Source of the DNA: Cyanophora paradoxa CCMP329
Taxonomy: Eukaryota > Plantae > Glaucophyta
NCBI GenBank assembly: GCA_004431415.1
Contig: QPMI01000525.1
Location: 38,187-102,186, forward strand
Direction of reading: 5' to 3'
DNA length: 64,000 nt
Position numbers and translations under genes: made by a program. This document shows positions 19,938 through 50,586 of the stretch, in pieces (position 1 is the first letter of the stretch; every line of letters starts with the position of its first letter). The notes below the pieces were generated by a model. It ran no database searches. It was not told the origin of the DNA and saw only the letters and a list, made by a program, of their open reading frames with translations.

Positions 19938-22900
19938 TCAAGTGCCGGTGCCGACAGGGTGTGATTGGAGGAGTGAAGGCGCATGCTCTTCGATCGTTGC
20001 CAGGAGGACGTTCTTCCGGAGTGGCCTAGAAAATGAGTGAAGGGCGATGAGAAAAGGGGCGCTGCAAGATTGAATATTTAAATTGTATTTGAAAAGTACG
20101 GAGCGCACTTCAAGAGGACTCCGTTCATGCCCACCTCCGTGCAGCGTCCCACGCCCTCTCCGACGGCGTTCGCCGTCTACACGTGCAATGCGTAAGTTGC
20201 AGTGAGATTTCGAATTCTGGACGTCGACTGCGGCCGGCAGCACGCACGAGGGCGAGGATGGCAGAGGGCGGACCGTTCGTAAGCCCACCCGCCTCCTGCA
20301 GCATTCTTTGATCAGTGATCTGGAGTGCATGTGCGCTGTATATATAACTTTTGCAAGCGTCAGCACGTCGCAGTTTCTCACTACACACAATCAAAATATT
20401 ATGTAAGCTTACGATCCGACGATGGAGGCATCGACTCTAGATTTTCGAGTCCTATATGTACAAGGTCTCATTTGCCGCACCAGCTCTCGGATCTCCCGTG
20501 TGGCATCGATCCCTCCCAGGACCGGCATCTGCGGGCCCGCGGCGAGGGACGGTCGTTGAAATTTAAAAAGCGGATCGATATCCGGATTATAATCAGTGCA
20601 GACATTGAATTTAGAGTTAACGGCGCCTGTAGCCGAATCGAGCTTAAATGTCCATGGGAGCTTAAGCTTCAGCCAAGCGTAAAAGCTCTGAGATTCGCAG
20701 ATCTAGACCTAAAGCGTAAAAGCGTAAAAGGTATCTGCGATCTGCTCTAGGCCTAGAAGTGAAAGTTCACATCGCGATCGATATTGCCTACGGCAGGATA
20801 CTAGTGCGGAGACTCCGCCTAGATAATTTTTCTCTGTTCTTCTTGCAATTGTTCCACGACTTCCCCGATATCGATTCCCGGATTTCCGGAGCCAAATTCA
20901 AGGGCCGGCGCCCTCTCGAGGGCGGAGCGGACCTCGAGGTCCATGAGGATGAATGCAGACAGGGAGATTAATATTATATATAAGGAACTTGTAGCCGAAT
21001 CTCTTTGTTATCTATAAGGAATTTCTTATAGTTCTAGTGAACTTGACAGCGCGGGCCTCGAGGTCCATGAGGATGAGGGCGAAGGGCGGGGCCCCCGCCG
21101 CCGCCCGCCCCCGCACCGCCTCCACCGCCTGCGCGCGCGATTTATTCCCGGAGTCGCGTCAACGTTCCCAGCGCGAATTGATATCGTTCCCACGGCCAGG
21201 CGGGCTTGAGCTTTGGATGCAAAGCAGTGCTGGCCCGGTGGAGGCGCGCAGCTGGACAGCCGCTGCTCCGTTCCAGAAGCGCTAGCTTTGGCGCCCCTAG
21301 ATAGATAGATATTTTTTCCATGATCTTCTTAGATTTTTATACAGGCCATAGGTATATATATAAATATATATTCTTCGTTAGATAGATGGGAACGTTAGCT
21401 GCCGCATGCGCACCGCGCGACCGTGGATGGCCGTCGCGGAGGGGAAGCCGGCCTTGGCAAGCATAGAAGAGACCACTTTGCGGCTGCAGGGGGCGCGGGG
21501 AGCGCAAACGGGGGCGCACGCGCGCCTCCGTCAGCGGATCGGAGGGGGAGGCGGGCCGGAAACTCAAGGGCGGGTGACCCTCACTTCATATCCACGTCAT
21601 CAACAACGCTGCCGTGCCGAATATTAATCGAAGGTGATTCAGAGAGAGGGGTGAGAGTAAGAGATCTAGAATGCGCATATCTCGTTGTTAACGTTTCTGT
21701 AATGATATAAGAGCTATAGATGGACGGCACATGCACGCACAGCACTCCAGGAGCGGCGGGCGCCGCCGCAGAGGGCGGCGCGGGCGGCTCCGGAGGAATT
21801 GAAGCCCCCGTATCCGTCGCGGATTTCGGAGCGGCGGCCGCATTCTGCGGTGCGAGCGCGTCGGATGGCGCCGGTGCGCCCCAACGCACTTTCGGTTTGG
21901 GGGCTTTGCATACGTCAGCTGCAGCCGGAGCCTCCGGCGGCAGCGGCGGCGGTGGTGGCGGCTGCGCCGGCTGCGCAGTAACCGCTGCAGCTCGTCCTGC
22001 GCGTGCACGAGGATCAAATCGTTGGGTCCGGAGCCCGGATCCGCTGCGCATGCCAAGCGCCGCCCTCGCGGCAGCGTGGGTCATTAGTATTAAATATTGC
22101 CACATGCGCACCGCCTTCGACCGGCGCCTCTCGGTCCGATGCCGAGTTTTCAGCTGCAGCTGGCTGGCCGGAAGTTCCTGCAGCTGCAATTTGTTCCGGG
22201 CTTTCCGGGATTTCCTGCAGCTGGCCATGGGGCCCTGGCCATGGGATCGGGGCCGAGGGGCCGGCGCCGGCGCCCTCGCGATCGGTCCCGGGAGCGCTGC
22301 AGCTGCCCGCAGCCATCGCGCTTCCCTCCGCTTCTTTCTCTGTCGGACGGCGCACGAGCTCGACCTCGCGCACGCGTGCCATCTGGAGCGTCCATTGGTC
22401 GGAAATGTGGAAATTAAATGTGGTAGGGTCGACGACGGGGCGCACCGCCCGACGAACGGCGGCCGCGGTGGCGCAGAGGGCGGCCCCCAGCCTGTGGAGG
22501 CGGACCGGCTTCGCGAGGCGGACGACGTGGAGGGCCGCGCGCTCGGCCTCCGACGTCGACGAGGCCGCGGACGGCGCCGCCGCCGGCGCCGCCGCCGAAG
22601 GACGCCGACCCTCGCGATCGTCGCTTTGCCGGCGGCTCTCCCGCCTCGCACGCGGCACAGGTGCCGTCAGCCGCAGGAGCCCGAAAGGGCGACTGCGCGC
22701 GCGAGCAGGACCGTCGGCATTGCAAGCTTAAATTTACGCGCGATTTCGAATTCGAGATCGAAACTCAAGCGTCGAATGAAGTCGACCGCGCACTTTTCTG
22801 CGGCACGCAGTAGATCGTCGTCCGGTGTCGAGGCGTCCGCGAGCAACACGGCAGCCGCTGCTCCCGTCGAGACGGCGAACGCGTTGGGGTCCGCCTCGCA

Positions 22901-25900
22901 CGGCCAGCCCAGGCCCCGCACGCATGACCGAAGGATCGCGGCGACGGCGGCGTCGGGGTGCAGAACGAGTACCTGACAACATCGCGATCGAAGATTAATA
23001 TTATTGTAACTGCGACGTATGTCCACGTTGGCGGAAGGATCTCTAGATCTGCAGACACAGCCAGTGGTGATCTAGTGGTAAACGGACCGTCGGCGTCTGG
23101 GAGACAGCGGGGAGAGCTCCCGCCGGGATGCGACCGGTACCGGCCCGGCCGCCTATGCACGTGGAGAGCGGCCCGAGCGAAGGGATCTCTTCCAGCCTCG
23201 CGAGCGCTTGCTCGGGCTCGGGCTCGGCCTGGATCAGTGCTATGGTGAGCACTCAAGCGGCAGAGGCGCCCGCGAGCGCGAGACGCGGGGGGCCGTAATT
23301 GTGAATGTCGACGTCGACGGAAACCTCAAGCGTGAGGCTAGCCTATACCTAGATCGTCCACTAGTGTTTTGAATTGCGCGAAATCTATAAGTAGATATTT
23401 AGATTCCTCGTTCGCATAATATTCTCACGCGACTACCGTTAGTACTCACTTGCTCGCCCCAGGCTGGCTGTGCTTGCGGAGATCCAGAGTCCGATTCCAG
23501 CTGCGGAAGGGATACCTAGACACATGTACAGTGACGTCGACACATTGGCAATCAATACATGAAAAATGCTGGAAACGTTGTCACAAGCCGAACGCGCCTC
23601 GAAGAAAAAGGTGCTGCCATGGCCCGGGCTCGAAATCACGTCGATCACACCGTCCATCTGTTCGACGAGCCTCTTCGACACGGCGAGTCCCTGGGATCGA
23701 ATCCCGCGTATTAGTATTCGAAGAGAGAATCGGCGCCAAGAAATAAAGAAGAGAATAAATAAAGACAGAAGCGAGCACCATCCCCGTTCCTCCGAAGAGG
23801 CGAGTGATGCTCTGGTCAGCCTGCCTTACGTCTTCATGATTAGAAAGGCCTGCAAGGCCACATGCAAAAAGGGAAGTGCGCCTGGACGTAATCCTAGGCC
23901 TGCAAGCTTTAGAGAACATGCGACATTTAATTATAAACGTGCCTGGTTTAAACAAGTCTTGAAGGACATGCGAAATTTAAAAGGAAGCTTTAAAGAACAT
24001 GCGAAATTCAAAAGGAAGTGCGCCTGGACGTAATCCTTGAAGATGCGGTGCTGTCCCTCCCTGTCGCGAGGTAGCTTTTGTTAGATTCCGAACAAGCAGC
24101 TTCAGCTTGCGATTTGATCTCACTTCGCGATTCCCAGGCCGGTGTCCGTCACTGAAACGCGGAAGTTGACCTGAACAAGGCGGCACTGAATAGGTTTAAG
24201 GCTACGCATAGTGGAGCGCAATCGCACCCGTCCTTGCCCAACGGACAGAATGGAGACAGAGACAATGACGTGCCCCCGGTGCGTAAACTGCGAGTTCAAA
24301 ACGAGGAAATATACGCGATGCCTGGGAATGCCCCATGGACTTCAAATTTAAGCGAGAAATTAAAGCGATCTGACCTTCACTCCGTTGAAAGTCAGGTTCG
24401 TCACTATCTGCTTTAGTCTGCGCGCGCGCGCGCGCGTGCGCGTGCGCCCCGCCCACTCAAACGGTCGCCTGATCTAGAGACGTAGACCTAGGCCTAGACC
24501 TCCAGCTGTACGCGATCGGCATCGGCGTCGCTCGCCTGCACGGGTCGCCGACGAGCTGAAGGGGCCCGGGGGCGCAGGCCTCGCGCTGCACGGCGGGCTC
24601 CGGATCGTCCTCGCGCCAGTTCCAGCGCGGCGGGGCGTACACCGCCAGCTCGACGCCCTTCGAGAACGCCGCGGGCGCCACGGCCTGCATTAATATTCAC
24701 GGAATTAATTGAAGCTTAAGTTCAAGCAGAACAAAGTTAAGTTCAAGCAGAACAAAAGCTGAGATTGATGATGAGTTATGTATGTATGAAGACTGTGATT
24801 CGAATTCGATCCGATTAAAAGCGCGAGGTCATATGATCACCTCCACGACCTCTTCGACCACGCATCGAAGATCGAACGGGATAGACTCCAGATCCAGCTT
24901 CCCCGCCTGCCGCATATATACATAAGTGAAGCTCGTAACTTTGACGTCACATTAAAAATATTAAGATCGCGTCGAACGCAGTAGGTAACTAGGGGCCCGG
25001 CCGCGTTTGGCGCGCCGGGGGTGCAAGGGGGGAATCGGGATCTAATGAAAGAGGCCCGGTCGGCGTGCTCGGCCGGCACACGCGGTTCTGCAATATAAGC
25101 TCGATATAAGCTCGATATAAGCGCAGCAAGAGAGTACGGTCTAGATCTGGCCGGCCGGGCGTGCTCGGCTGCGATCAGCTGCAGCGGCGCAGGCAGCAAC
25201 GCAAGCAGTTTCTAGGCGGAAATCTAGAGGAGACGTTGACAGGTAGAGAGAAGTGGTTCCATGCAGAACCGCGCAACGAAGAGCAAGGCGTACGCGACGC
25301 ACTGCGTGGAAGCCGAAATCTAGAGGAGACAGCTAGGGAGAACTGGTTCCATGCAGAACCGCGCAAGGAATTCGAAGACCGGAGTTAGAGAGAAGTTAGT
25401 TTTCCCCTCGAAAACCACTTTTTCCCCTCGAATTCGACGCTCGAAAGTCGAGAGCTGACCGGTCCACCGAGCCAATCGGAAGGCGAATAACCAACATTTT
25501 CGTTGCAGACTGGCCCTCGAAAACGGCCTCATAGAAAAATTTTGGCTGAAGCGAGGGAACGGGAAGCAAGGGGGCCCCCTTCCCCCCTTGCAATTATATA
25601 ATCGCACCTCCATCTTGTGAAGCTGCGAAAGGTGACGTTTACAAGATTGGTTACAGTAAAATAGGTAGACGCGACTAGAAGGCCACAAAGACATCTAGAT
25701 TTGATTTCCATTCTTCGCACGTCGAGCAGGTCGTTCACAATGACGAGCATCTGTGAACGATATAAACAGCTTAAGCACACAGGAGGTCACTAAAAGCCTA
25801 TGCGCTCTTGTAGAAAATAGTGCGCACTTGATCCGAGGAACTTCGCATCGAATCGAGAAGGTCGCGCTGCGGAGAAATCTTAAACTCCAGGATGCACGCA

Positions 25901-28900
25901 CGTGACCAGCGCGCGATCCCCCTCACTTGCATAGCTAATTATATAAATTTAATGCGTATGAACACCGACCTGCTCGTCGTTCAGAGGAGTGTCCTCGAGC
26001 AGCTCCCCCATCCCGAGCACGCCGTTCAGCGGGCTGCACATGTGCACGCGGGTCAACGTAAACGTTAAAACGTTTGATTCGCGCATGCGTGCGACGTTTG
26101 CACGAGAAAAGTCATATATAGCCTCGGATGCGGGTCAGCGTTTGCGCATGCGCGCGAATGTTGCAGCGCATGTATCGCACGTACGTTCGCAGCTCGTGAA
26201 CAGTGTAGGCGAGGAACCGGTTCTTCGTCTGCAACGTCGCCCCGCGCGCGCGCGATTCGCGATCGGGTGCACGTGAAAGAAATGCATCGCATTCGGAATT
26301 CAGTACCCACCTCGTTGACTGCCTCGGCCTCGATGCGCCTTCGCTGCTCGGTCACGTCCTGCAGGCGGTTTATTGTTCCGCAGTGCTCTAGATCTTGAAA
26401 ACGCGCAGTTTCGACGGGAGCCGCACCTGAGCGACGATGATTGCGCCGGTCGCGTTGCCGCACGCGTCGCGCCGCGCCGTGGCGCTGATGAGCAAACGCA
26501 GAGGTCGGGTTCCATCCGAATTCAGGCTGTTGGGCGAATCCGAACGCCGAGCGGGCTGCGCTCGTGTGCGGGCCAGGGGCGAATTGCATGCAAGTCTTTA
26601 AAGTTGCGAATTCGAAGGAGTATGTTAATAGTCAGGCTTGCTGCACCTGGACATTAATATTGCAATTGAGAACGATTTCCATCGGCTCGTCGTGTGGCCA
26701 CGTGCACGCGCACTCGATCATATTGCTATTGCTCATCGCCTGCGCGTTCATTTCTTTGCGGTTGGCGCATATATCGCACGGCGATACTCGGCGCAACGTT
26801 AACTATCTTAAGCTTATGCGATACGTTTTATACGCGCAGATTCAGAGGATCCCGGTTTATGCATGAGCACCTCGGCAATGAGGGAGCGCGTGGCACTCTG
26901 ATCGGCATCGGCTACAAGGCTCAGAAAGGGCTTCCCCACGACAGAAGCCTGCGCGCGTGCATCGTAATTGATTGGCGGACGCGCTTCAGTGCTCAGAACG
27001 CCACGCGGGCAGCAATCGAACGACACCTCAGGCAGGCCAGTGACGCGTGCGGCGGCGCGATTCCAGCCCGTGACGAGGAGCTCCGTGTTGACGGACACGA
27101 AGGGGCACGCGGCGTTGTCGACGACCCGTTGGAGCTCGTCACGCGTGATTCGCGCCCGGAGCTGCGACGCGTATTATTATTCAATAACTGATCAAAGGAG
27201 GACTTAAGCTTTCTGCTCAAGATCAAGTACTAGCTATAGCGCAAGCTCGGATTCGCACCTCGCTCTGCGTCAGAGCCGCTTCCATAGCCTTCGAAGACAA
27301 CGCAGGCGTTAACGTTAATTTTATTTACGGGCCTGCGTGCGCGTTTTCGCGCCACTGACCTTCCGCCGCGAGATATCGCGAACAATGAGGACGCGCAGGG
27401 TCTGGTCTCCGTGCACCATCCAGCCGACCGAGAGTTCCACGTGCACGTGCATCAACTGCATAGATCTGGAGTCCCGAGAGGCCCCGAGGCCCTGCGCGCG
27501 CGCCCGCAGCCGGTCATGATTATAGCGTTCCACCGCCTCGTTAATTATAAGCCTCCGGATCCGGCGTCCACGTGCGCTCACCGCCGGCGTCAGATGTCGC
27601 GCCAGGCCACGGCACTCCATGGTGACGCCCTCCGATTGCTACGCGAGCGCATCGATATCGGATATCCGGATCCCGTCGTTTAGCTCTGTCTTCGAAAATT
27701 AATGTGTGCTTTCTAGAACCTACAGCTAAGATCTAGAGTACTCTCCGTGGCTCTAGATCTGTGCACCGGAACGGCAAGGAACGATGCCAAGGCTGTTCTC
27801 TCTTCCTCAGCAATGTAGTCCATGACCGACGGCCGCGAACCGAGCTCCGCCTCCACTTCCGCTGCGAAAGATCGATCACAAAATTGAGATTGAGACCTTG
27901 AGCAGTATAATGACTCCCACCGCTCGACGATGATGGGTAGAAGAGCCGCCGGGCTTTAATTTGCAAAACAGCAATATCAAAGCGACGAACGACGGGACAT
28001 TTCGGGCATTTCTGCGCATGCACCCGCGGCGTTCATGTGTAGGATCGAGCCGAGCTCGCCGAGTACGATGAGGGAGTCCGATATCGAGCTGGTGACCTCG
28101 ATGCCCTGCTGAAGCTTCTCCAAGGCTTCTCCGACCTACGTACACTGACGCGTCGGTTGCGCGTGCGAGATATTAATCGCGCCTCAGGTGTAGAAGGACG
28201 GATTCTCGCACGCGGTCAAGCTCAGAGATGAACGAGTGCACGCGATCCGAGTGCTCCGCCTCGGTTGTTGTCGATATCGCTGCTGCTTGCTGCTCCTGAT
28301 CATGTGTGGAGAGCAGGGTCGAACCGAGCGCCTCGACGTCGATGGCCCCGGAAGAGCTCAACCGTCGGTGGCGTAACGCGGGTCCGGGGCCAGCTGCAGG
28401 CACGGCGAGAGCAGGAAGCCTCGAGCTGCTCCGTGTACCTCCGGATCTCACTAGTGGCTGAGAGCTCGAGCTCGAGGAGAACGAGACCGGGAGTGGCGTC
28501 GCGATTGCGATGTCCCGATCGGCACCCAGTGAGAAGAAGGACAACTTGTCCAACTTCCTCCGGAGCGCGCGCATTGTTCTTCCCACCTGCGCATGCCCAT
28601 GGTCAGCGCTAGCCCTTACGTATATATGCGCGGTCGCCGTCCGGATCCGTGCACATGTACGTACACATGCGCGACGTACCTCGACGACAATGAAACCGCC
28701 AAGGAGCAGAACGACGGCGCCGCACACGCTTGCGACGACGATGAGAACGATGTTCAGCTTCTCCACATGCCCAGCTAAATCTATTCGATGTATTAATGTA
28801 CAGCTGATCATTGTAGTTATATAATAATTGGGATTGATATTGCGAGGTACCCGTATGGGGGACGGCGACCCCAAGGAGCAGCTGGAGGGATTCTTCTGGG

Positions 28901-31616: not shown

Positions 31617-31954
31617 GAAATTTTGCCGGTGGCGCCTCCTCTAGTGCTCGAGCGCTTGCGCGCGCAATAATAGTTGCTATAGTAATAGCTAGAGTAAAAT
31701 AATTAATTTTAAGAGTAGCTAGGGGAGGGGGGGGGGATCCGGAAGCACAGGATCGAGGTTAAAGGAGGGTGGAGGGGGGGAGAGAGATCTAGAGGGCAGA
31801 AGTGGGAGGAGAAGGGCTGGAGGAGGGGGATCGCTAGCTAGCTGTTCTATCGCGAAAATTCGAGGGGAGATCTAGATCTACAAGTGCAAGATCTAGATCG
31901 AGAGCTCGAGGAGCCCGATCGACCCTTGAGCTTTCGCTGCGGCACGCGATATCG

Positions 31955-34900
31955 ATGGAGCGGCGCCGCGCCACCGTAGAGGGCGAGAACGCAGTGCGCT
32001 TGGATGAGGCGCGGCTGGCGGCGCTTCGGGAGCGCGCCGAGGAGGAGGTTCGAATTTGCGCGAAGACATCGCGTGCCATTTTTGAGCCGCGCGCCGAGCT
32101 CACGCCAGGCCGCGCGCAGCCGCTGGAGTACGTGAACGCGGTGCAGGGCTTCGCGGCGCTCGTGGCGGTCGACGCCGAATTCCGCGTCGTCCACGCGAGC
32201 GGGAACTGCGCGTCGTTCTTCGGGCTTGGCAGCGACTTCGGCAGCGTCGTGGGGCGCACGCTCGACGTTATATTTGATCGAGAAACGGCCATGGAGCTTC
32301 AGGAAACCGCCGAGGAATGCCGAAAATTGCAGTCGACGTCGGAAGGAGCGGAAGGCACGAGCGAATCATCAAGCAAGGTGGAAATGAAGGTAAGTCGTTT
32401 CGATTCGACTCTCATGATCACTTGCCACTCTCACTTTTCCTATGGCGGCATCTGACCCTGGGGCCGGGCTTATCGTTTCGCGTCCGCAGATCGAATTGAA
32501 AGGACGCGTGATGATCTGCGTTCTGCACGCTATGCGCGAAGAGGACCTCACCTGCATCGAGATCCAGCCCTGCACATGCGGTCCGCCGCTGCCTGGCCCA
32601 TCTTATGTTGAAAGCTGTACTACGTATACGCGGAGCGAATTCAAACTTGAATCGAAGCTTATTGCGATCGGCTCTGCGCTTGTACAGTGACAGATCGTCG
32701 ATTCAAGCGCCGGGTTGCTCTTTCGCAAGTTCACAAAGCAGTCGGTGCGGTTGCGTTCGTCGTGATTTATCAATGGGCATTGCCACGTGCACCCTTGCCC
32801 GTGTCACTCGATTGTGCAGAACGCTTCAGCTCGTGCCCTGACCTGCAGTCTATCTGCAAAGAGGCGGTGGTGCAGGCGCGCTGCGCGTTGTATTTGCGAT
32901 TTCTTGCAATTTCCCCCAGCTTTCGTTTCCCTGCTGATCGGCACGTCACGCCGGCAGCTCATCGGCATGCTTCACTTCGATAGATGCCTTTTTTATCGGG
33001 TACGAATGAGAAGGCCTTCACAGTGCTGGAGCAGACTAGAGGCTCGGCAATTCTTGAAAAACAACCTAAACGAAGTTTTTAGAGAATGTGGCCGGTGATT
33101 CACCATACAACTGCAAAAACTGAATTGGAAAACAGCGCTTTTTATGATCGATGCTTATAATTAAATAATTGGTTCTTCATTTCAATACACGATTCTGTCT
33201 TGACCTTCTCCCAAGTTCGATCGGAACGGGGAGGGTTGCGTCGTCGCCGAGGTCCGTGAGATCTTGATCATGAGCTGACATTGCATCAATATCTGGAACT
33301 CGTGCTCAATCGCTTTAATTTCGCATCGGCTAACACAAGAGCTTTGAACAGGAGATCGCGGACGACGCCCCACCCCAGATCGAACGCTATCTCGGTTCGA
33401 TTCCCGACACGCGCAATTACAAGTCCTGCCTGGCTATTACCTGACGTCGACTGCGGCCGGTCGGCAGGGCTGCGGTTCCCCGCGTGGGATATCCCTCTGG
33501 CGGCGCGCCGTTTCTTCCTCCGCAACCGCCAGCGCCTCATCCAGGACGCTTCTGCGCGTGCGAACCCGAATTCAAGACTGAAGGGTTTCCTCTTGCGCGC
33601 TCACAAATCTTCTTGGGGCAGCGCCCGTTGCCATCGAGCCGCCTCTAAACAGTCGGACCGGCCGCCCCATCGACTTGACTTACGTCGATTCCCGCCGGGC
33701 GTCTCCCTGCCACCATATCCTTGCAACCTCTCGGATTCGCGCTCTGCTTGAATTCGCACTACCGGCCCTCGACTCCTGCTCACTGCAGTACATGCTCAAC
33801 ATGGGTACTAGCACGTCCCTCGTCAACGCCGTCGTTGTCCACGGGCGGCTTTTCGGTGCGTAGACGCAGACAATGGATGCAGTGGCTCCCGATGATATCG
33901 GGCCGCGCCCTTGCAAATGTACTCGCTCGCAATCGAGCGCAATCGAATGTCTTGCAGGCCTCCTGGTCTTGCACAACGTCCAGCCAGTGTTCATCTGCCG
34001 CGACGTGCGGCGGGGCAAGGCGATTTTCACAGAGGTTCCTTCCATTGCTATTTTAGATCTCACTTATCTCCTCACGTATCTGTCCATGAATTCTCTGAAC
34101 TGTTCACAGAGCGTCGGCTTGGCGCTCGAGAAGCGGCTCGAAGTACTCAAGCACGCATCCGAGGCCCGCGGCCGCGAACTCCACTTCAAGGTCGTCCGCG
34201 TTTAATGAGTATTATTATACGCGGTGATACAATATTAAGTATCTGAAGTTCGCGGCGGCTAATAATTGAGAATCCTGTTTGCGGATTGGGATGCTGATTA
34301 ATATTCGCACGCACCGGTACCTTTCTTCGCGTCAGGTCTTGAGTCGCGTGACCCAGGTGTGCATGCGCACCCAAGCTTGCGTGCATTTTAAAAATAAACA
34401 ATTTTTTGGGGCATTTCATATATATCGGCCGGAATTCGACTTCGAATCACTTTCGCAGACGCACGAGAAAGACGTGCTCGACGAGCTCTGCGCGCCTGGG
34501 GGGATACTGGACGCGATCCCCGCCAGCGACGCCGCCGCCTTCGTCCTGTTCCCTGAGCCGGCGGAGGCTGCGGACTCGCCCATTGCGGCGGCGGCGCGCG
34601 TGCCGCGGGTGCGCGTCGGGTGCTGCAGCGGGGCCACTGCCGCCGCCCTTGAGGCACACGTCTCCGTGGTACGCCTGCGCTCGCGCTTCGAATCCAATTA
34701 TTCATACGTGCGGCAATTTCCCTTCAGCTCTGCCGTGACGCCGTGCCTGCTCGATGGGTGGCCGAGAGGCGCGCGGGGAGGATGGAAAAGGAGGTGCGCA
34801 TCCGTTTCGACGGAATATTAATAGAGGAAATGCATACACACAGATCGCTATCCCCGCCATTATCTAATTATACGCCCCACTCTCTTACAAGTACTCCGTT

Positions 34901-37900
34901 GATATACGCCCATCCTTCCCTGCAATACTGATGTAATTACGACCGCACCGCCCACCCGCACCAGCCGGCCGCGGATCCGTTCGTCTGGTGCACGGACAAC
35001 GTCGCGGGAGAGCTCCGCGTGCTCGCCCGCGCCCCGTGGCTGTCGGATGAGGTTCTGAAATTCTTATCATTTTATCTACTTTGTTCGTTTGCTCGTGTAT
35101 ATGCGTTTGCTCATCGAAAATACGGCAGCGGCGGGAGGCGCTCGTTCGGCTCGCCGAGCGGTGGCCCGTCGAGAAGGCAGCGGGCTGCATCGTCGTCGAG
35201 TTCATTCACGGTCGCGGGTAATTGCGCAATTGCCGCGGCGCATGCCTGCGCACGTGGCGGCCTAATCCCATCTCGAATCTTTCAGGTATCTTGTGTTTCT
35301 GCGAAAGGCGTCCACCAACCGGGAGACGCTGTGGGGCGGTGATTTGCAGGAACAATCGCAAGGTTCTCTCAAGACGGAAAAGTTGTCCCCCCGGTCCGTC
35401 TTTGAAAGTCCGATTGCATTTTTCCACAATAGTATGATCTTTAAATTGATCATGAACACGTACCCTTCTGCAGAAAATCATTTGCCACCTGGAAGGTTTC
35501 GTCCTTTGCGATCATCAAAATTGGCCTAGTCGACCTCCCGCCTTTTTGTATTGATCGTCTTTGCGCTTTCAGGAGCTTCATGAAGACAAGTCTATGCCTT
35601 ATTCGGAAGAGGACGGCTTCTTCGCCGGTGACTCGCCATACTTGCGCAGACGATAATTAACGAAGGCGATGTTTGACGCACGTAATTTGCGATTAATATT
35701 TTCGCTAACGCGTCCTCACGGTAGCCGCGGTGGGACGGGGCCTGGCCGACGCGATCCAGCTCGCTGAGAGCCTTTACTCCCGCGGCCGCTCTTTGATTGA
35801 GGTGATGATCCTAAATTATAATTCATTGCAAGGTCATATATAAACGCTTTGATCGCCTGTGGTTCGAGCAGTTAAGCGAGCGCCTTCGGCTGCGTGAAGC
35901 GAACCTGACGGACCCCATTGCAACGGAGGATCTCGAGCGGAACCGGGTGTTCGACATCGTTCCGGCAAGTCGTCGAAAATGCGCGAACGACATTGCGAAT
36001 TCTTGAGAGACCCGTGTTTTCTCCGTAGGTACCCGTTGCAAGGGTGGACGCATCGATGTGCATTGAAGGTCCGTCTATGTCATGATAAGCTGCACGTTTT
36101 GAATTCTCAGCGATGTCGCTGATTGTGAGCGCGCTTCTCCGCAGATTGGAATGCCGCCTGTGAAGACTTTTTCGGGTCGGCACGCTGCACGTATAACGGC
36201 GCCGGCCTGCGCATAGCCATGGCTCCCCATGGCCATAGGCTTTCAGCTGCGAGGTTTGCATATTCGTGAACTCAAAATCGAGCTGCGGCGCAGGCGCTCG
36301 CGCGAGGAGGTGCTCGGCAAGCCCTTCGCGGAGACGTGCTTCGCTTCCACCGGCCCCCAGTTCGCCACCGGTTCGAATTCGCCGCGCGGGCGGGCGCGTT
36401 GCAGATCTAGAGCAAACGTACATTATTGTCGACGTCGCCCCCGGTCCAGACTCATCATCGCTCTGCTTGCAGTTCGATCGCTGCTAGCCTGTGCCCTGTC
36501 TGGCATGCATTGCCGCGACGATGCCGTGAGCCGATTTCGCACATCGATATCGATTCCGACAAGAGCCTAGGCCTCTCATGACCACCTCGGCCGCTCCTTA
36601 TTAAGATTGCTATCATATTTAATTCAGATTCGAGATCCCGCCATCGGACAGTGTCCAGGCCAAGGCTGCCCCGTCTCAACCAAGCTTCGAGCCGAGGTAC
36701 GCCTCTTGGAATTAGCTATATAGGGGTCTAGTGCAATTCGACGTTTATACGTTTTATATTCATTCGACGATGGCAGATTCCGATGCGGCGGCCAGGCGCC
36801 GATCGCGATACCGTAGTATGCATCTATGCCGTCCCGGTCAGATTTCTCGCCGTCTGTTGAAGGGCCGAACGGCACTGACACACGCATTAATATTCGTCGA
36901 CAGCGCTTCAGTCCGGCGCTCAGCGGCATCTGTGGGGCAACGGTCGTTTGCGAGGGCGAGCGCGCTGCTTGCGTCGACGCCGAATCGTGCGCTTGCTCCC
37001 GTTTATGCAAGCCGCAGACGTCGACGCGCGCGTGCTGGAGCAGGACCGCCGCGTGCGTTGAATTTGCGTTAGAGGGCGCTTAAGCTTGTAGATTAGCGCT
37101 CTCATTTCCCGCCATCATGACCTGATCTGATTTGCGTGTAACCATCGATATCGATACTGCGTACGCAGTCGACTTCCAAGGCAGCGAGCGCAGCCGCCTC
37201 GATCTCTTTGGCGACGGTCTCCCACGGTCCGTTGGCCCGCTCGCTTTTGCTCAAGCTCGTTCGCTCGCGGTTGTGTGTGTGCGCGCGCGCGCCTCGTTTA
37301 CTAATGACGAGACCGATCATGCGCCGGAACATCGATATCTGCAGAAGTCCGGACGGTTAGCTATACATGTTCATGATCGCTACGCTATCTCTACAGAATC
37401 TGACCGGTATTCATTCGCTCGTCCTCAATTCAGCCTCTCAGCGGTTCGGATTCGAGTTTGATTCTTCGTTTTTAAGCTTTCCCGTCCGCATCCGCGAGCT
37501 CTGCCTGACGTGCCCGACATGCGCAGGGCTTCTCGGCATGCTCCAGCTCTGCATGTCGGCGTTCAAGATGCTCTTCGCATTCGGTTCTTTCCTCCAGCCT
37601 CACGCACTCGCGTGCGCCGCATGCGCAGGGACACGCCTCTGCCACAGGACGCCGCTAATTTTCTGAAGAAAGCCTACAATTCAGGTGTGAACGCGCGCTC
37701 TAGAAATGGACGAATTCGAACGTCTTGAGCTCGGCAAACATTCATCTCATGCCAATGCTTCAGCGGAGTACCTGCAGATTCTGATGTCCGACCTGTTTGA
37801 CGTTTCTCTCATCGGAGCCCGCAAGCTCGCGTGCGCCGCTTTCCTCCGCCCGCGGCCAGCATAGGCTCTGATATATTCAAATCGTATCGAATTGCAGGCT

Positions 37901-40900
37901 TCACCAAACCTCGTTTGTCGTGCGAGATCTGCTCCAATCCTGTGCTGCGCTGCTCGCCTCGAAGGTGCGTACGTCGATCGTACGAAGTAAAAACCATCAA
38001 CCGCTATACCTGCCGCACTGCTTTTAATTTAGTTAATGTCATACTTAAGGCTTTTGATGGTACTCTCACGAAATAACAGTGCTGCAAAAAGCAAAAGCGA
38101 CACCCTGGGCATTCAAGTTCGAGCTCTAATATTAATTCTTTACAAAGTTCCGGGCAAGCCTGCGAGTCTCTTTTGTATATAATAAAGTACGCGTGCAGGT
38201 TGAAGAAGAAGGGCTCGCGCTGACGATCGATGTTGACGAGAACGTGCCGCGTGAAATGGAGGGCGACGCGAACCGGCTGCGGCAGGCGCGCGGGAGCCCT
38301 AGACACACACACACACACACATTCACATTAAATATATATTGCGACGCCTCTCATTGCGGATGATTTGACGCGCGCAGGTCATCCTGAATTTTCTCTCCAA
38401 CGGAACCAAGTACTCAAAGGTAGCTTTTGCCCACGCCCACACGAATTTCAAATTTTAGTGCCTGTCTTCTGTCCGCCTGTCGAAATTTATCACAAGTGCT
38501 CGTGTTCGCAGCACGGGACTCTCCGGTTGCGCGCGCTCCGCATTCCGCCGGGCGCAACGGTACCCGGCCCTTCGAATTCGAATGCTAGCTATAGCTTCTT
38601 TCTTTCTTTAATGCTCGAAGTTCAACATTCGCAATACGAAATATTCCTCTTTTCCTTCACATTGCGCTACGATTCCTTCATTATCGACGCAAAGGCGCAG
38701 GCGCCGGCGCGGCTGGGCGAACTCGGCGCTGCGACGCCGCGGGTGGAGCACGCGGCGCCGGAGCGCGACATAGAGCACGACCAGCTCTTCCTCGAGGCGC
38801 GCGGGACCGTAATTATAACTGGGTTCTTCTTTGAAATGCATATGCGGTCATTAAATTAATTATTGGAGTCTTGTTCTTGTTATTGGATTTTAACTCCAGG
38901 TGGCTAGCTTTATATAGCGGCTGCAGCTATTATCCCATCCGCCTCTATTATTATATAGCGGCTGCATCTTCCTCGAGGCGCGCGGGGCCAGCCGTAATGG
39001 GTTCTTGTTTAAGATGCATATGCGATTATTGGATTTAAACTTCAGGTGGCTAGCTATGTATATATTGCGGCTGCATCTATTATCGAATTCGCCCCTAAAA
39101 GCAAATGTATAGCTCTTCTTTGAGGCGCGCGGGGCTGTACCTGCGTTCTCGTTACAAAAACCAATAAATTAAATGATTCGCGCAGGTTCGGGACGAGGGC
39201 ATCGGCATCGCCGAGGCGGACTTGGGCCGGCTTTTCCGTCCGTTCAGGCGAGTGCCGGCTGTGATCGCAACTTGCGACGCCGCGCCTGGCGGTCGCCTAG
39301 TTCTTTGCTTGAGCCTTCTTATTATCGAATATTATTATCTCGATTTGCGATCGGAGTACTCCAGTTTCACGCGCGATCGCCCGTGGAGATCGGAGCTGAC
39401 GGAGAAATCGAACACAGCCGTGTCTTTACAGCGCGAGCCGGCCGCCGGAGTTCGAAATCGACGGAGAGGGCCGGCGAGAGTCCGAGCAGCACAAGCGACG
39501 CCGAAGGCCTGGGCCACTACCTCGAGAGCGACCCGGGGGGCACGGGCCTCGGCCTCGCAGTCAGCCGCGTGCGCTTCGAAATTCGCTTTCACTTCCCATC
39601 CGCGCTGCTTCCTTCTCCTCCATATGCATTCATCGTACCCGCTTGTACGACGCTCATCCTTATGCTCATCGTGCGCGTGCAGGAGCTCGTCATGCTTATG
39701 CACGGCGTGATCGGCTGCACGTCGGTGCGCCGCACGGCCATGGGGTCGATCATGAGCCGGGATCTTCCCAGCGCTAGCGCCTTATTCTCTTCCGCGTCCG
39801 CAGGTGCCTGGCGTCGGCAGCGCCTTCTACGCTTGCGTACCCATCCTCCCCTCCTCCGCCCCGCCACACGAGGTCCGCGCGCCTTCACCTGCTTCTGACC
39901 ACTCAATTAAGAACTGCACATGAATTTCTCGTGCCGCAGAATGCACCTCGGGGCCATGGCCATGGCCATGGGGATTGGAGCCCCCGGATGCGGTCGCCGA
40001 GCTCGGGCTCGGCATCGAGCGCCGGCTCGAGCCCGTCGCCGGGGGCTTCTTCCGCCGTCTCCATCGCCTTCGTGCGTGAGCGTCGACATTATATTATATT
40101 TCTCTGATTTCTCTGATATTCTCTCTCTCTCTCTCTCTCCCCGCCCTCCTCTGATTTCTCTGACATTTTTCTGCAATTGCGCGAGCACAGAAGACGCCCC
40201 CGTCCGTGCTGCTCGTCGACGGTCCGCCCTTCACACTTGCGCCGCTGCCGCAAAATAATCTCCCAAATATATAGTCTCGCACAATTCGCGTGTCGCAAAA
40301 CCACAACGCGCCTTCGAATGCTTTTTGGGCTTGCACCGCTGCAGCCAGCTAATTTAGAATCTCCCGGATCGTTTCGCCAACTAATTTCCCGGATCCGGAA
40401 CCCCCGCATGCACTATTTTATTGCAGACAACTCCTTCAACCGGGAGGTAGCCACGCTTATGCTCCGGAAGAGCGGCTGCGTTGTCGAGACGGTGCGCGCG
40501 AGCGCTCTGCAAGAACGGCTTATGCCGTGGAAATCGAAATATGCATGCTCAATCGCTGTTTTCGCAGGCGGAGGACGGGCGGCAGGCGGTCGACGTGTTC
40601 GCGGCGCGGCAGGAGACGGGCGGCCCGCCCTACGACTGCATCCTCATGGACTGCGAGGCGCGCGAGAGCCCTGCAATACTATCAGTTCGGCGTTGCCGAA
40701 TTGATAAATCTAGATGTGCATCGCCGTCGCCATCGCCGTGCTCCATTTACTCAATAAGGCTCCCGCGATTCTAGATTTCTGCGGCGTCGATTGATGTGCA
40801 TTATCATCGCTGGGCTCTAGGTTCCCATCATTCCTGGCGACTTGGCAGAGCTTGCAACCCGCGCACGCGCGTTTTCCGCGATCGCTCTCTGTAGCTGACG

Positions 40901-41396
40901 AAGCTCGAACAGATGCCGGTGCTGGACGGGCTGGGGGCGGCGCGCGAGATCCGCCGCCTCGAGGCCGGCGCCGCCCCGCCCCGCCCCGTCCCCATCGTCG
41001 CCCTGGTCCGCTGGGGCCCCTATAGCTAGGCCTCCCCACCTTGTAGTTGACATCGCCGCTCTGATTCGTTTGCGCGCACACAGACCGCGCACGGTGCCTC
41101 CGGCCGCCTGCCCTTCGATACATATGGCCGCGCCTCGGATTTTCGCCCCTCTTTTCCTGAGGCTTAGGCTTTATCGGCGCATGCAGAGCTGGAGGAGAAG
41201 CGGGCGGCGTGCCTCGACGCCGGCATGACCGACTTCGCGCGCCCTCTTCTCTTCTCTCTAATTTCGCTCTGTTTTGTGCCCTCAGACTCTAATTTCGCGG
41301 CAGGTGACGAAGCCCATGACGAAGGCGAAGCTGCTGGCCGCCGTCCTCCACGCCGTCGAGCCTGAGCCCGAGGACGAGGAGTACGCCGCCGTCTAA
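31955..41396 (+). CDS. Phytochrome: PAS-GAF-PHY-PAS-HisKA-HATPase-REC hybrid kinase with GAF-Cys bilin attachment
   Basis: Spliced motifs: EEEPLEYVNAVQGFAALVAVD (PAS), FDRCLFYRFDRNGEGCVVAE, YLGLRFPAWDIPLAARRFFLRN, DLTYVDSRRASPCHLQYMLNMG, LFGLLVLHN, WGG..LSPRKSFATWK (PHY tongue), DWNAACEDFFG..EEVLGK (PAS), TVSHEVRTPLSGLLGML, GDANRLRQVILNFLSN, VRDEGIGI, GGTGLGLAVSR, DNSFN..ILMDCEMPVLDG..GMTDFVTKP. Stop TAA at 41394-41396. Confidence 0.95.
33715..33783 (+). other. U12-type (minor spliceosome) AT-AC intron in the phytochrome gene
   Basis: Begins ATATCCTT (U12 5' consensus), has CCCTCGAC 10 nt before the end, and ends CAC. Removal gives TGC CAC C/TG CAG TAC = C-H-L-Q-Y, restoring the conserved phytochrome spacing exactly. 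Confidence 0.88.
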
Positions 41397-42146: not shown

Positions 42147-45100
42147 TCACTCTTCTGGCGCTGCAGCCGCTGGCCCCGCGGCTGAGCGCGCGCTCGGGGC
42201 CGGGGGGCAGGCGGGCGCAGAGAGGGGGCCGAGCTCCGGCTCCGGCTCCCGCGCCCTTCGCCTCCCCACGAGGTACGCCTGCGCAGGACAGGCGCCGCGC
42301 GTCCCGTGAGCCCCGCGCCGCGCTGCCTCCGCCTCCGCGGGCGCGCGCGCCTGGATTCTCCCTTTGCCCTTGGCCTCCACTTGGCGCGGCTCCATTTCGT
42401 ACATGTCCCGCACCCGCTCTGCGCGGACCACCTTTGGTTTGAATTCGAGGACGTGCTGGGCGGGGATGATAGCTATAGGTGGCGGAGGCGACCAAAAGGG
42501 AGTCGAACCACGTCGAATTAATCTCATTAATGGCTTATTAGCTGTTCTTAGTTATAGAAATCTTAAAACGGGGATAAATATACAGCGGCGGACCGTAGGT
42601 GGCGGACGAGACCTGGATGCGGCCGGGCACCCCCGTGCTCTCCATCCTGCGCGGCGGGCCGGGGCGTGGGCCGAGGGGCGGGCGCGCGCGAGGGGCGAGC
42701 GTCCGGCCTATCCCATGGACTCGAGCGTTTAGAAAAGAACTAATGCCTTTTGAAAGCCCCCGCTTAGCTTCGAATTCGTTGATTTCTTATATGGCGGGCG
42801 CCGGGGGCACCGGGAGGCGAGGTTGACGCTGTCGCCGTAGACGTCCCACGCGATCTTCCTCGTCGCGATCACCCCTGCGGCCCCGCGCGAAGGGCGGAAC
42901 GTCAAATAATCAAATAAAAGGGGCGGCGAGGGGCCCCCGAGCCGCCCCGGCTCCGAGCCGCAAGCCTGCGCGCCTGCAACCACCGAGCTGCGGGGCGGCG
43001 GCGGCGGCTGTCAGACGGTGGGCGCCGGAGGGAGCCGGGGGCGCGAATGGGCGCGCGGACCCCGTGTTGAGTCCGGCGCTGCGAGCGAGAGCGAGAGCGA
43101 GCGCAGGGGCGTCAGAGCGCGATCCGCGAGCTCGAGGGCGGGGGCAGAGCCCGAGCGGGCGTGGCGCGGCCCGTGCGGGGCGGACCGGAGCTTGAGATCG
43201 ACGCCCGCCACCGAGGAGACCTCCTGCGCATGCCGGGCCGGATCGGATGCCGTGAGCGCAACGCGAACTTAATTAATTAAGAGTCTCCTATCCAATGATA
43301 AAACCCACTTCTAGTACGAGCTAATGAGCTAATGTATATACAACGGACCCGCATGGCGGCGAAGACGGCGAGGCAGAACTCGACCATGTGCCCCGGCGGC
43401 TCCCGCGTGATGTAGAATGCCTGCGGGCCGGGCCGGAAGCGTCGGGGTGCGCCCCGGCGGGCCCTTGGCCAACGCAGCCGGCCGGCCGCGCGTGGGGACT
43501 TGCGAGTAATTATAAAATTGCGTACCGTGTCCCCGATGAGCTTCACCTGCTCGCGATCGGGGGCGACTTTAATTTCAGCGAGGCACTCGGTGGGCAATGG
43601 CGGCGGCCCGGCGGCCCGGCGGCGCGGCGCGGCCCGGAGGCTAGGGGCCAGCGCGCGCCTTCTCAACGCGGAAGCGGTCGTTGACGGCGTCGAAGGCGCG
43701 GAAGATTGACTGCGCATGCGTGCACGCACGCCGCCCCGCCCCCAACGCCTTAGCGGGCCGGCGGCCCGGGGGCAGGGGCGGGGGCGGGGGCGGGGCGGGG
43801 CGGGGGTGGGGGCGGGGCGGGGCGGGTCGGGGGCGGGGCGGGGCGGGGCGGGGGCGGGGCGGGGGCGGGGCGGGGGCGGGGGCGGGGGCGGGGGCGGGGG
43901 CGGGGGCGGGGGCGGGGCGGCGGTGGGGGCGGGGGCGGGGGCGGGGCGGGCCTGGAGGAGGGCGACCGTCTGCGCGGGCGGCTTCTCCGCCGAGAGCGCA
44001 GCGAAGCCCTGCGGCCGCGGGCAGGCCAGAAAAGAATTCGAATGGTCAGAAGAGAAGCCAGTCAGAAGAAAGAAGCAAGGAAGAGCGCGGAGGCGCCGGC
44101 GTGCGTGCCGGGATGTCGAAGAAGGCGAGCGTGGCGTCGTCCAGCAGCTGCGCACGCGTCGTTGGAGAAAGCTTCGTCGCTTGCGTTCGTTCTTTGAGAG
44201 AGATAGCTCAACGCGGCTTATGTATAATTAGGTGCGGCGGCAGAGTTGCAAGTTTTTAAGGGTCTGCCCTGTCGGGCAACCCTGGCACGCGTGCCTTGCT
44301 TGCACTCGGTGTTCTATATCAACTCTAACCGTCCCGTGCGGCCGGCGCCGGCGCACGTCGGCGATGCGCTGCTCGCCGGCGATGAGGCGGCGGGCGATGT
44401 CGGCGGGCACCATCGTCCGCAGCAGCGCGTCCGCCCGCTCCTGCAGGTCAGAGAGCGTCAAAGCTGGCGGAGCGGGGCGGAGCGAGGGCCTGGGGCGGCG
44501 CGGCGCACGACGGCGGCGCGGAGGGCGCGCTGCTCGGCGACGAGCGCCGAGACGTCCCTCGCCACCACCACGAAGAACGGCTCCTCCCCTGCCGCCGCCG
44601 AGCTCAGGCGGGGCGGGGCGGGGCGAATTCGCGCACGGTCGCGGTCGGTGCTCTCGGTGAGGCCCCCGCCGAGGGAGACCTGCGCGGGGAAGCGTTCGCC
44701 GCCCCGCCGCACCCCTTCGATCGAGTCCTCCTGCCGGGCGCTTGAACTAATTGCAAACAAACATGCAGCTGCAGAGACGGGGAAGGGCGCGGGCGAGCCT
44801 CGGGGTTGCCACCGATGACTCCGCTGCGGATCGGGACGCTGTGCGGGGTTTCTAAATCTTGAATCGACTGCGCGCTGCGAGGGGCGGCCTCAGCTGCGGG
44901 AGCTCGAGACGGAAAGCTGCGGCGGGCCCTCGCGTTGGCCGGCGCATGCGCGCCTGAGGCGGCGGTCGCGAGGCGCGAGCCGCAGGGAGGGGAAGAACTC
45001 CTCGAGGCGGGACCCCGCGAGGTCCTCGGGGGCGCCGCAGTTGAGGATCGCAGCCGCCGCCCCGTTCGCTTTCTGCGGCGCGTCCAAATTAAAGGCCCCC

Positions 45101-45928
45101 GAAGCAGGAGCGGCGGGACAGCGGGGCGGGCCTGAATGACGCCCCCAGCGTCGACGATAAACGTTGGGTCTGCACATGCGAGCTCTTCGGTTGGGTCTGC
45201 ACACGATTAGGAGAGTCGTGCACGACCCTCAATTCGAATCTAAAGCGGCCCTCACCGATGGTCCCCGGGAGCCTCAGGACGGACCCGCCGAAGAGGATCG
45301 CATTGGTGCCCTGCACGCGGCGTCGGCGCCGGTGGGCGGCGGGGGGGGGGGGGGGGGGGGGGGGGGTGCGGGGGGGGGTGCGGGGGGGGGGGGGAGACAT
45401 CGCAGCAGTGGCGCTGCGGCGCACGTTTGCAAGGAATGTCTGCGCGATCCGCCCCATCTCCATCTGGACCTGCCGGAAGCCCCCGCGCCAGAAGGGCGCG
45501 CCGATAGGCGTCTGGGCGACGGCGAGCTCGACCGACAGCGCCGCGAGTGCCGCGGTGCCGTACTGCGTCACTAGAATCTGCGGGACATGTCACAGTGTGA
45601 GTGAGCGCCCGCGGCCAAGGCGGCGGGCGAGGGAAGGGGCGTTGGGGTGCGGGGCCGGACAGCGATGGAGAGGAGGCCCCGGCGCTGCTGGGCGCGGGTG
45701 GCCGCCACGACGACGGCGAAGGACGCGGCGACGAGGCCTAGGGCCAAGACGGCTACGATGCAGAAGCGGAGGAAGAGGCCCGCCAGAGGGCCTGCGCATG
45801 CGGGCGGGCGGCGCAGCTGAGGCGCGGCGCGGAGCGGCGCCGGCACCGGCGCCGGCGGCGGGCTCGCGTGAGCGCGGCGGACCGAGGAAAGGGGCCCTCC
45901 TGCCCTCCATCTGCGCCCCACGAGCCAT
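42147..45928 (-). CDS. Membrane-anchored PAS-domain class III nucleotide cyclase, predicted adenylate cyclase
   Basis: [101 protein letters not shown]. PAS segments ANGAAAAIL and GVRRGGERFPAQVSL; N-terminal TM helix. The Lys (VKLIGD) plus Asp (WDVYG) pair indicates ATP specificity. Confidence 0.88.
43770..43950. repeat. (GGGGC)n tandem array, potential G-quadruplex, intronic in the cyclase gene
   Basis: About 180 bp of near-perfect GGGGC/GGGGGC units. Confidence 0.9.
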
Positions 45929-46263
45929 CACGAGGCGAAAAGTAACCGTATGCCGAGCGAGGAGCTAAAATCGTTTTTTCAGAGAAAAGAGGCGCGCCTC
46001 GAAGCGGGCGTAGTCGGCGATCGCCGCCTCCGCCTCCTCGGCCTGCGTGGGGCGCCAATCAAAAATTATATATAGTGTCTTATAAGACTTTTGATTTATA
46101 TAAATCTTTCTCGTTATATATATTGTGACTGTTAAGACTATGTGGGGCGCAGAGGGGAGTGAGGTGCGCGCGGCGGCACGTGCGGAAGCCGTGCAGAGGC
46201 GAGCTCGAGCAGCGAGCAGACTTTATCGGCGAGCTTCGAAATTCCACCGCAATCCCGAAATTT

Positions 46264-48450
46264 TCAGACGGCGCGGCGCACCTCGTCCTCGCGATCGCCG
46301 CTCGGCGCCTCGGACCCGAGGGCGGGGGCCTCCCCCTCCTCCTCCCCCTCCCCCTCGACCCCGCCCCCCCGCTCCGACGGTGACGACGCCGCCGCTTCGT
46401 CCGACTGCAGGTTGGGCGTGTCCGCCCCGTACGCCTGCGCCTCTCCGCCCGTGGCATCAGGTGCCGCCTCCTCGCGCTTGGGGAAGAGGGGGCCGAGGAT
46501 TTCCGCTCGGATTTCGCGCGCAGTGCTCCGCGGGATCTGAGTCGGGTCTTCAATTTTAATTCGAGGCGGCAGGGGCGGGCGGGGAAGGGCCGAGCGGGCC
46601 TGCAGGAAGACGCGGAGAAGGCGATCGCGGGTCCACCTCACATACCAGAGCACGGGCAGCATCACCCCGAATCTGGGCGCCCGGTGAGGCGGGGCGAGCG
46701 CCGGCCCGATTGCGGGGCGGGCGTGCATGAGGAAGACAGCAAGGCCAGCGGCGGCGCAGAAGAGGGCAAGGGAGGAGCGGCGCATGGCGCCCAGTCGGTG
46801 GATCTGCAGGCGGCCGAGCTCGTAATTTGGAGGCACGCGGGGACCGGGCCGTGGCAGATTCAGAGAGCGGCGCGGACTGAGCTGGTGACGAAACTAAACG
46901 CCACGGCCAAGTTGCCGCCGGGGAGCGCCACGTGTCTGGCCATGGGGCGCTTATAATTAGGCTTCAGAGGAACCGAAGGAGGGAGGAGGAGGGGAGCAGA
47001 AATTAATTGAAGGCCTAGATCTAGAGGGTTCGCACGAGTTGGCGAGGAGGAAGAAGAGGCCAGGGGTCATCCGGCCGGCCGCGATCGCGCGGAGCGCGGA
47101 CGCAGACGCAGATGCGTTGGCGGCAGCCGCCGCGGGCGGCCCCGCGGCCGCGGCTGCCGCCGGAAGCAGGGCTGCCGCCGCCAGAACGTCCTCGGCCGAG
47201 CGGAGCGCCGTCAAGAGGCCGTCCAGGAGAGTCACTGTGCGGTTCCTTTGGCTGACGGCCGCGGCGGCAGCCGCGGCGGCCGCGGCGGGGCCGGACGTCG
47301 ACGGCGGGCGCCCGGCGCCGGCGTGGCCGGGGCGTTTGGAAGCAGTACCAGCTCCCGCACAGTGACGTTGGACGACCAGAGCTGCTCGCGCGTCAAGAGA
47401 GGCGGCGCCCGGACCGCGGTCCAGGGCTGGGAGAGCAGAAGCGCACGTCTGCAACGGGAACGGATTTCCCGAATTCTCCCTCGGGCACGTTGAAGAACAG
47501 TTCCTGCAAGGGCGATCAGGAAGCTGCCGCAGCGGGCCCGCCTGAACCCCTCTCTCCGATACGGCACGCCTGAAGAGCGCGTCGCAGGTCCTCAGTGCAC
47601 TCGCGGAGCTGCGCTGCGGCGGCGGCGGCGGCCGCCGGCCCGCGGAGGGCGGGCGGCACAAGGGGCGGGGGCGAGGCGAGTACCGCCAGCTGGAACGCCC
47701 GCGCTTTCTGTGGGCCGAGCTTCACTTCGAATTCGAGGGCGGCCGGCAGCGGCCCTCGCGATCGCAGGAAAGGGGCGCGCGCGCCTCGCCCATGCAGGGG
47801 ACGTACGAGCGCGTCCGCATCGCGCTCAGCGCTCGGCTGCGGCGGGGCCGGGCCGGGCCGGGGGGCAGTCACTGAGTCAGCCTCGAATCGACGCGCCATC
47901 GGGCGCGGCGCGAAATTTGAATCTGCGCACTTGTGCACGCGGAAGCTGGAGCGAACCACATGAAAGTTCGCGAGGAGCGCCGCCAGCAGCGCCAGCACCT
48001 GCCCGCCCACGGTCACGCTCCACTTGCTATTGGGGAGTGCGCGGTACGGAGAGGCACGCACGGAGAGGAGGAAGGCGACGTGGAGGACGGCGAAGGCGCG
48101 GTGGTAGCGGGCCCGCACGTCGGTGGCCACTTCGCGGCGCTGCGCGGCCGACCCGTGCGCCCACTGCCGCTTCAGCGTCGACGCGGCGGAGGACGTCCCG
48201 CCCCCTGTGTCCTCGCTCGGCTCCGACGCCGATGCATCCAGCAGCGCCGTTGTTGCGTCCTGCGCGGTCGGCCGCCGTCGGTCGGTCCTCGAGCTCGCGC
48301 CGAAGCGTAGCGGGGCGGGCAGCGCGCGCGCGCCTCCAGATCGTTGTCGAGGCGACGCTCACGCAAGCCGCCCATGCGTATCGATATCGCGCGCACGCCC
48401 GAAGGGGGCGCCCGCGCCTCCCGCTCCGCCTGCGCCCGCTGCGGGAGCAT
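46264..48450 (-). CDS. Hypothetical multi-pass membrane protein (multi-exon)
   Basis: Hydrophobic segments AFAVLHVAFLLSV, VLALLAALLANF, SLALFCAAAGLAVFLM and FGVMLPVLWY joined by plausible introns; likely ATG at 48450. No family recognised. Confidence 0.5.
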
Positions 48451-48465: not shown

Positions 48466-48748
48466 ACACATAGTAAAATGCGGAGTTTTAACCCTCGGCT
48501 TATCTTAATTGATTTTGTTGATATATCTCGTATATTCTATTTCAATCAATCGATAATCTGTGTATATCTTATCGAATATTCAATTATTTCGATTATTTTG
48601 TATTCTTTTCGATATTTTATCTTAAATTTCTCTTATTTTCCGATTAGTCTTACTGAGTCTATCGATAATCTGTATATATTTCCGAATAATATAACTGAAT
48701 CTCAATTAGATCTTGCCTCTGGTTAAAACTCCGCATTTTACTATGTGT
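48466..48748. repeat. 28-bp perfect inverted repeat at the element terminus (arms 48466-48493 and 48721-48748)
   Basis: ACACATAGTAAAATGCGGAGTTTTAACC ... GGTTAAAACTCCGCATTTTACTATGTGT, extending imperfectly inward; internal direct repeat ATCGATAATCTGT. Confidence 0.95.
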
Positions 48749-49000
48749 GATTGGTCTAAAAGTTAATTGATTTAATCGATATTATATTCATGTACTTTCT
48801 CGATTAAATTTAATTAAATTTAATTCATTTAATCGGAAATATATCGCTAAACTCGATTAAGATCCATAAAAGATTCATTTGTTAAATAAAACAAATCGAT
48901 CTCTTATTGAATTCAATCGTAATTATACATGAAATTGATATGTTATTATCATGTTTTAATGATTCTAAGGGGGGACCCTTAGGATTTTTGAAATAATTGG

Positions 49001-49461: not shown

Positions 49462-49552
49462 TTATACTCTGATTCATTGTTATTTCCTGTGAAATTTGAG
49501 TCAACTCAACCCACTTAGTCAACCCTCCCATTGAATTCGTAACAAAATCCAT
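49340..49552 (-). CDS. Small hypothetical viral protein (70 aa) ending inside the hairpin
   Basis: ATG preceded by the element's TAGTAAAAG motif; the C-terminus CDRCDRSIPNF is encoded by the hairpin arm. Confidence 0.4.
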   Translation of the reverse strand: MDFVTNSMGGLTKWVELTQISQEITMNQSINAFFESTTPTNTEIFTIYEVLTEYGLCDRCDRSIPNFSIA

Positions 49553-50564: not shown

Positions 50565-50586
50565 ACTCTATATATAACCAATATTC

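Follow-up and report, generated by a model that had tools for sequence, protein, structure and literature searches.

The phytochrome gene and its surroundings

The window analyzed here, a 64,000-nucleotide stretch of the Cyanophora paradoxa CCMP329 genome, contains a many-exon gene that by its domains and motifs is a glaucophyte phytochrome (Table 1); bilin binding and photoconversion are predicted from the gene model. The model was obtained by profile-guided spliced alignment followed by hand curation, using an aligner that prefers open frames, and is uncertain in exons 12-18 and 40-47 (the middle of the PHY domain and far C-terminal exons). Its 52 introns comprise 42 with GT-AG ends, nine with GC-AG ends and a single one with AT-AC ends. 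For database searches, single stop-free stretches of the gene served as queries. Pfam PAS_2 was matched on exons 1-2, and PDB and plasmid sequences matched the phytochrome PAS-GAF-PHY core. The model retains the DIP motif, the GAF Cys-His pair, the equivalents of Tyr263 and His290, and the WGG and PRxSF motifs, while its C-terminal half carries one further PAS-like segment, the kinase His (SHEVRTPL), the N and G boxes, and the receiver Asp. Loss of the kinase His was considered and dropped, as the fuller model has SHEVRTPL.

Table 1. Coordinates, in the window, of the phytochrome gene, its AT-AC intron, and an intron used for comparison
Feature	Position	Strand	Remarks
Host gene, glaucophyte-type phytochrome (modelled)	31955..41396	+	53 exons, 1184 aa; PAS-GAF-PHY-PAS-HisKA-HATPase-receiver
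Comparator GT-AG intron 1, 72 nt	32048..32119	+	In frame, stop-free; excised in public model
Exon 10, GAF segment to S-P-C-H plus first base of Leu codon	33622..33714	+	
Predicted U12-type AT-AC intron, 69 nt, phase 1	33715..33783	+	Intron 10 of 52 of the gene model
U12-type donor ATATCCTT	33715..33722	+	8/8 to consensus (PMC2831892)
Candidate branch site CCCTCGAC	33766..33773	+	6/8 match with TCCTTRAC; A33772 at -12 relative to the 3' end
AC acceptor of AT-AC intron	33782..33783	+	
Exon 11, (L)QYMLNMG helix with Tyr263 equivalent	33784..33855	+	

Public annotation breaks the phytochromes of this alga into pieces. When the exon 1-2 stretch was searched against EukProt, three models were retrieved, all from Cyanophora paradoxa. 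The public phytochrome models tig00020999_g16975, tig00021070_g17885, and g17878 are fragments (142, 137, and 308 aa, respectively) that do not reach the chromophore Cys; as all three are truncated, the subfamily is under-annotated. Model tig00020999_g16975 consists of window exons 1 and 2 plus a read-through into intron 2; being identical to these exons, it shows that the public model of the host gene ends far before the AT-AC intron. The paralogue g17878 is 54% identical along modelled exons 1-9, and its model stops one exon before the Cys. A homologue search with g17878 returned a bacterial protein only, and a homologue search with the GAF read-through returned no match.

Kinase, phytochrome, and cyclase genes adjoin each other at this locus. 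The first, a many-exon hybrid histidine kinase on the minus strand (about 20000-27600), has a PAS domain, an H box (HELRTP), G boxes, and a receiver, and is transcribed away from the phytochrome. Between the two genes, the receiver exons (21050-21132 in the kinase and 40582-40664 in the phytochrome) are 75% similar. Convergent with the phytochrome, a many-exon gene on the minus strand (about 42800-48300) contains PAS-like pieces and others resembling class III nucleotide cyclases (GVIATRKIAWDVYGDSVNLASR). Kinase and phytochrome both lie in a block of lower GC content (about 0.55; 17000-42000) between flanks at 0.65-0.75. Farther away, a many-exon gene on the plus strand (about 4700-8750) encodes a P-loop (IIGSKASGKS) and a coiled-coil tail and resembles, by eye, a guanylate-binding protein/atlastin GTPase; a direct duplication of 180 nt (16151-16330 and 16687-16866) shows 84% identity. 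The end of the window, from 48466 to 64000, is an AT-rich insert (GC about 0.39) that opens with a 47-nt inverted repeat (48466-48512 and 48702-48748) and contains 181-nt direct repeats. Its open reading frames give matches to S-adenosylmethionine decarboxylase, to patatin, and to a fibre-like protein bearing a peptidase S74 chaperone, and several of its genes seem to be split by frameshifts. The insert is probably an endogenous algal virus.

An AT-AC intron within the bilin-binding motif

The bilin-binding Cys codon (TGC, 33708-33710; residue 289 of the model) is followed by the His codon (CAC, 33711-33713), a single C at 33714, and then ATATCCTTG from 33715. At its 3' side the intron reads CCCTCGAC (33766-33773), 7 nt, and CAC up to 33783. 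The preliminary description of this DNA had placed here a 69-nt segment starting 4 nt past the Cys codon, whose excision yields C-H-L-Q-Y-M and whose retention adds 23 aa without a stop codon; on re-reading, the coordinates and both outcomes proved exact. Excision generates SPCH-LQYMLNMG.

Why read this segment as a minor intron? Among the 52 modelled introns, it alone has no mismatch to RTATCCTT at its donor, all others having at least two, and its phase agrees with the known under-representation of phase 0 among minor introns. The branch candidate matches the TCCTTAAC-like expectation at six of eight positions and lies near the 3' end; six major introns of the gene also reach 6/8, so this match fits the assignment and has no discriminating power. 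A U2-type intron with AT-AC ends was considered and rejected, since ATATCCTT is unlike the major consensus past its first two bases; the major donors of the phytochrome gene are mostly GTGCG-, GTCCG-, GTTCG-, or GCGCG-like. In the whole window, the intron motif by itself is matched four times against 0.78 expected, a modest excess, three of the matches being situated in the AT-rich viral insert. Two further RTATCCTT sites on the plus strand of the host part of the window, at 3874 and 17266, were linked to no gene model and are probably due to chance. Counting against the AT-AC reading are the off-consensus branch site, the report of U11 alone from this genome (PMC10639083), and the finding of no RNA contig across the 33714/33784 junction.

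Comparison with homologues fixes the boundaries. In a phmmer search of the PDB, query residues 1-30 and 54-78 align to the contiguous stretches 221-250 and 251-275 of a bacteriophytochrome. As the two flanks are contiguous there, the segment coincides with an exact gap in the homologue and is not a product of chance. Using a Deinococcus phytochrome as a tblastn query, we obtained a single gap of exactly 23 residues at the intron site, and an insertion between the His and the next residue is absent from all 12 bacterial phytochromes compared. The probability of finding the ten terminal intron bases at the register fixed by homology is about 1e-6.

Could the segment instead be coding, or be removed by the major spliceosome at nearby GC/GT-AG sites such as 33723-33788 or 33699-33788? 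GC donors are in use elsewhere in the model (nine of 52 introns), in-frame GC-AG choices are present at the site, and a parse without AT-AC ends reads straight through. Against this, we scored GT-AG, GC-AG, AT-AC, and retention parses with a profile of 12 bacterial phytochromes, and AT-AC excision came first among the 31 in-frame, stop-free parses at 278.6 bits, followed by 268.1 bits for the next and 257.7 bits for the retained form. Every GC/GT-AG or read-through parse falls at least 10 bits below AT-AC excision and damages the C-H-x-x-Y motif, and each would make the perfect U12 donor at the exact homology gap a coincidence of the order given above. We consider removal by other sites, or coding of the segment, scarcely credible. 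The donor identity, the AC end, and the exact 23-residue gap relative to homologues instead bear out the preliminary description in its assignment of a U12-type AT-AC intron to the phytochrome chromophore motif, and the reading of 33715-33783 as such an intron is supported at the level of sequence.

Taken together, we think it likely that this is a real U12-type AT-AC intron in one of the many phytochrome paralogues of Cyanophora paradoxa, most probably spliced constitutively to yield a normal glaucophyte phytochrome. By analogy with the known pathway, U11 would pair with ATATCCTT and U12 with the branch sequence surrounding A33772; joining of C33714 to T33784 by the minor spliceosome would then complete the Leu codon and restore C-H-L-Q-Y-M and a normal photosensor. 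Any intron-retaining RNA would represent leakage, and the in-frame, stop-free state of the intron would be incidental.

Expression of the gene

Is the gene expressed? The stretch of the phytochrome gene is in none of 17 probable RNA runs. In contigs from four probable RNA runs, neither spliced nor intron-retaining transcripts of the gene turned up; the matches spanned only 40-44 nt, had about 85% identity, and included no joints, and no RNA contigs were found for the 31900-37800 part of the lower-GC block. Four runs that do contain the gene stretch, all from 2012, also contain intron words and are therefore probably DNA. The absence of RNA matches suggests low or conditional expression of the phytochrome gene, without proving silence.

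These same searches are what would be expected if the intron were real and the gene copy silent or decaying, so that neither isoform mattered in the cell. On this contig, a kinase-type model that may or may not be the present gene, evm.model.tig00020999.11, is listed as unexpressed in 36 diurnal samples (PMC6374488 supplement), and the gene region is lower in GC than its flanks. The model, however, is open over 1184 codons and keeps the pocket residues, the H, N, and G boxes, and the receiver Asp; its exons have a GC3 of 80% compared to an intron GC content of 51%, and the identity to paralogue g17878 extends along the modelled exons. Moreover, rare transcripts drop out of contigs, and the runs were classed as RNA by guess only. 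Since a spliced aligner can route around lesions, the intactness of the model is partly there by construction. On balance, we find a silent or decaying copy unlikely; under the constitutive splicing that we favour, the gene would seemingly be expressed weakly or conditionally.

Retention as a light-sensing switch

The preliminary description went further and proposed that retention of the intron acts as a switch on light sensing. Spelled out, such a switch would mean that the minor spliceosome skips the intron in some light or stress state, producing a full-length, NMD-immune protein with 23 additional residues after Cys-His that serves as a light-insensitive kinase or as a dominant-negative dimer partner. 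The retained intron is indeed in frame, stop-free, and placed in the chromophore pocket, and both the kinase His and the receiver Asp are preserved in the model. In animals, minor introns can be rate-limiting (PMC3728624). It is also reasonable to expect the retained form to be light-blind, with the Cys and His staying in place and Tyr263 and the helix behind it displaced; loss of photochemistry upon retention is plausible because Cys259, His260, and Tyr263 are pocket-lining residues in Cph1 (PMC11924222).

The switch fares poorly against the properties of the intron itself. Of the 52 modelled introns, 18 have a length divisible by three, and eight of these 18, the AT-AC intron included, are stop-free; among introns of at most 85 nt, five of the seven in-frame ones are stop-free, and intron 1 (Table 1) offers a GT-AG example. 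Upon shuffling of the interior of the AT-AC intron, read-through remains stop-free in 67% of cases, so that an in-frame and stop-free intron is expected by chance at about 0.22. Read-through of the intron is not coding-like, with a GC3 of 52% versus 80% in exons, and the 12 bacterial phytochromes have no homologous insertion. HMMER comparison of the read-through peptide with cluster representatives gave three repeat-rich chance matches only. The intron has no stable fold (z = -0.02), the contigs of the four probable RNA runs contain neither isoform, and a 23-residue insert at the start of the pocket helix may simply misfold. Furthermore, the pan-eukaryotic survey of minor introns yielded little evidence that they act in regulation outside animals (PMC10639083). 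We therefore regard the proposed switch as highly improbable. A wider version of the idea holds that a minor intron entered the pigment pocket of an ancestral phytochrome in glaucophytes and was kept in frame family-wide, with minor-spliceosome activity deciding how much of the kinase senses light and how much is light-blind; it likewise has a very slim chance of being correct. If true, a retention switch would couple minor splicing to photoreception, a link for which our literature search found no paper; the evidence does not favour it.

Origin and significance of the intron

Minor splicing in Cyanophora paradoxa, which the preliminary description had deduced from this intron, does exist and is no new finding, as 77 minor introns have been published for this species (Larue and Roy 2023, PMC10639083). 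In that survey only U11 was found in the genome, and the machinery was described as possibly transformed; the window itself gave no Rfam match and contains no snRNA. The AT-AC intron is missing from the public gene model and is thus probably not among the 77. When AT-AC ends are ignored, gene prediction reads through the chromophore motif. Given such read-through and the fragmented public models, a correct cDNA must include the 33714/33784 junction, and 77 is probably an undercount.

How did a minor intron come to lie in a phytochrome? Eukaryotic phytochromes descend from prokaryotic ones. The published phytochrome tree is rooted on this descent (PMC4525182). In a gene with this ancestry, the minor intron is probably younger than the last eukaryotic common ancestor, having been either inserted or converted from a major intron. 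This event would probably have taken place once phytochrome had entered this eukaryotic lineage, and the intron would then have been copied along with duplications of the phytochrome gene. Gain within the glaucophyte lineage is plausible. The PHY genes of land plants are not known to carry an intron here. A metagenome pattern scan for a like intron in other phytochromes, of low power as it covered only a TGC Cys codon and lengths of 54-84 nt, yielded 14 matches, none of them a phytochrome, and no phytochrome was found in the viral contigs searched.

Minor-intron gains, of which this is probably one that postdates the last eukaryotic common ancestor, are rarely documented. Large minor-intron gains have been termed extremely rare (PMC10639083), and one clear gain was reported among the animal genomes compared (PMC2831892). 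Cyanophora paradoxa may be another lineage of minor-intron gain, in which bacterially derived genes acquired many AT-AC introns that annotation has missed. We give this proposal even chances and find it likelier than a switch on light sensing.

Comparison with known systems

The modelled host gene shares the layout of the glaucophyte phytochrome sensors (GPS), which are described as PAS-GAF-PHY with a GAF Cys, a single C-terminal PAS, a kinase His, and a receiver (Rockwell et al. 2014 via PMC4525182, PMC12558739). The gene, an uncharacterised paralogue, may be CparGPS1 or another copy. The intron also invites comparison with exitrons. Exitrons have a length divisible by three, lack a stop codon, and lie within a coding domain, all of which is true of the AT-AC intron too; unlike exitrons, it has an intron-like composition, its retained peptide has no homologue, and no retained transcript was seen.

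Like the present intron, the minor-intron gain in Physarum polycephalum (10.1101/2020.10.12.336362) involves positions that are hardly ancestral and minor snRNAs that are possibly altered, whereas here we describe a single intron. With published U12-type AT-AC introns, the present one has in common the ATATCCTT donor, the AC acceptor, a candidate branch-like site near the 3' end, and a non-zero phase. As with the 77 minor introns of the same species, it is one minor intron among many major ones. It departs from typical minor introns in the two mismatches of its branch site and in residing in a gene of bacterial descent rather than in an old housekeeping gene.
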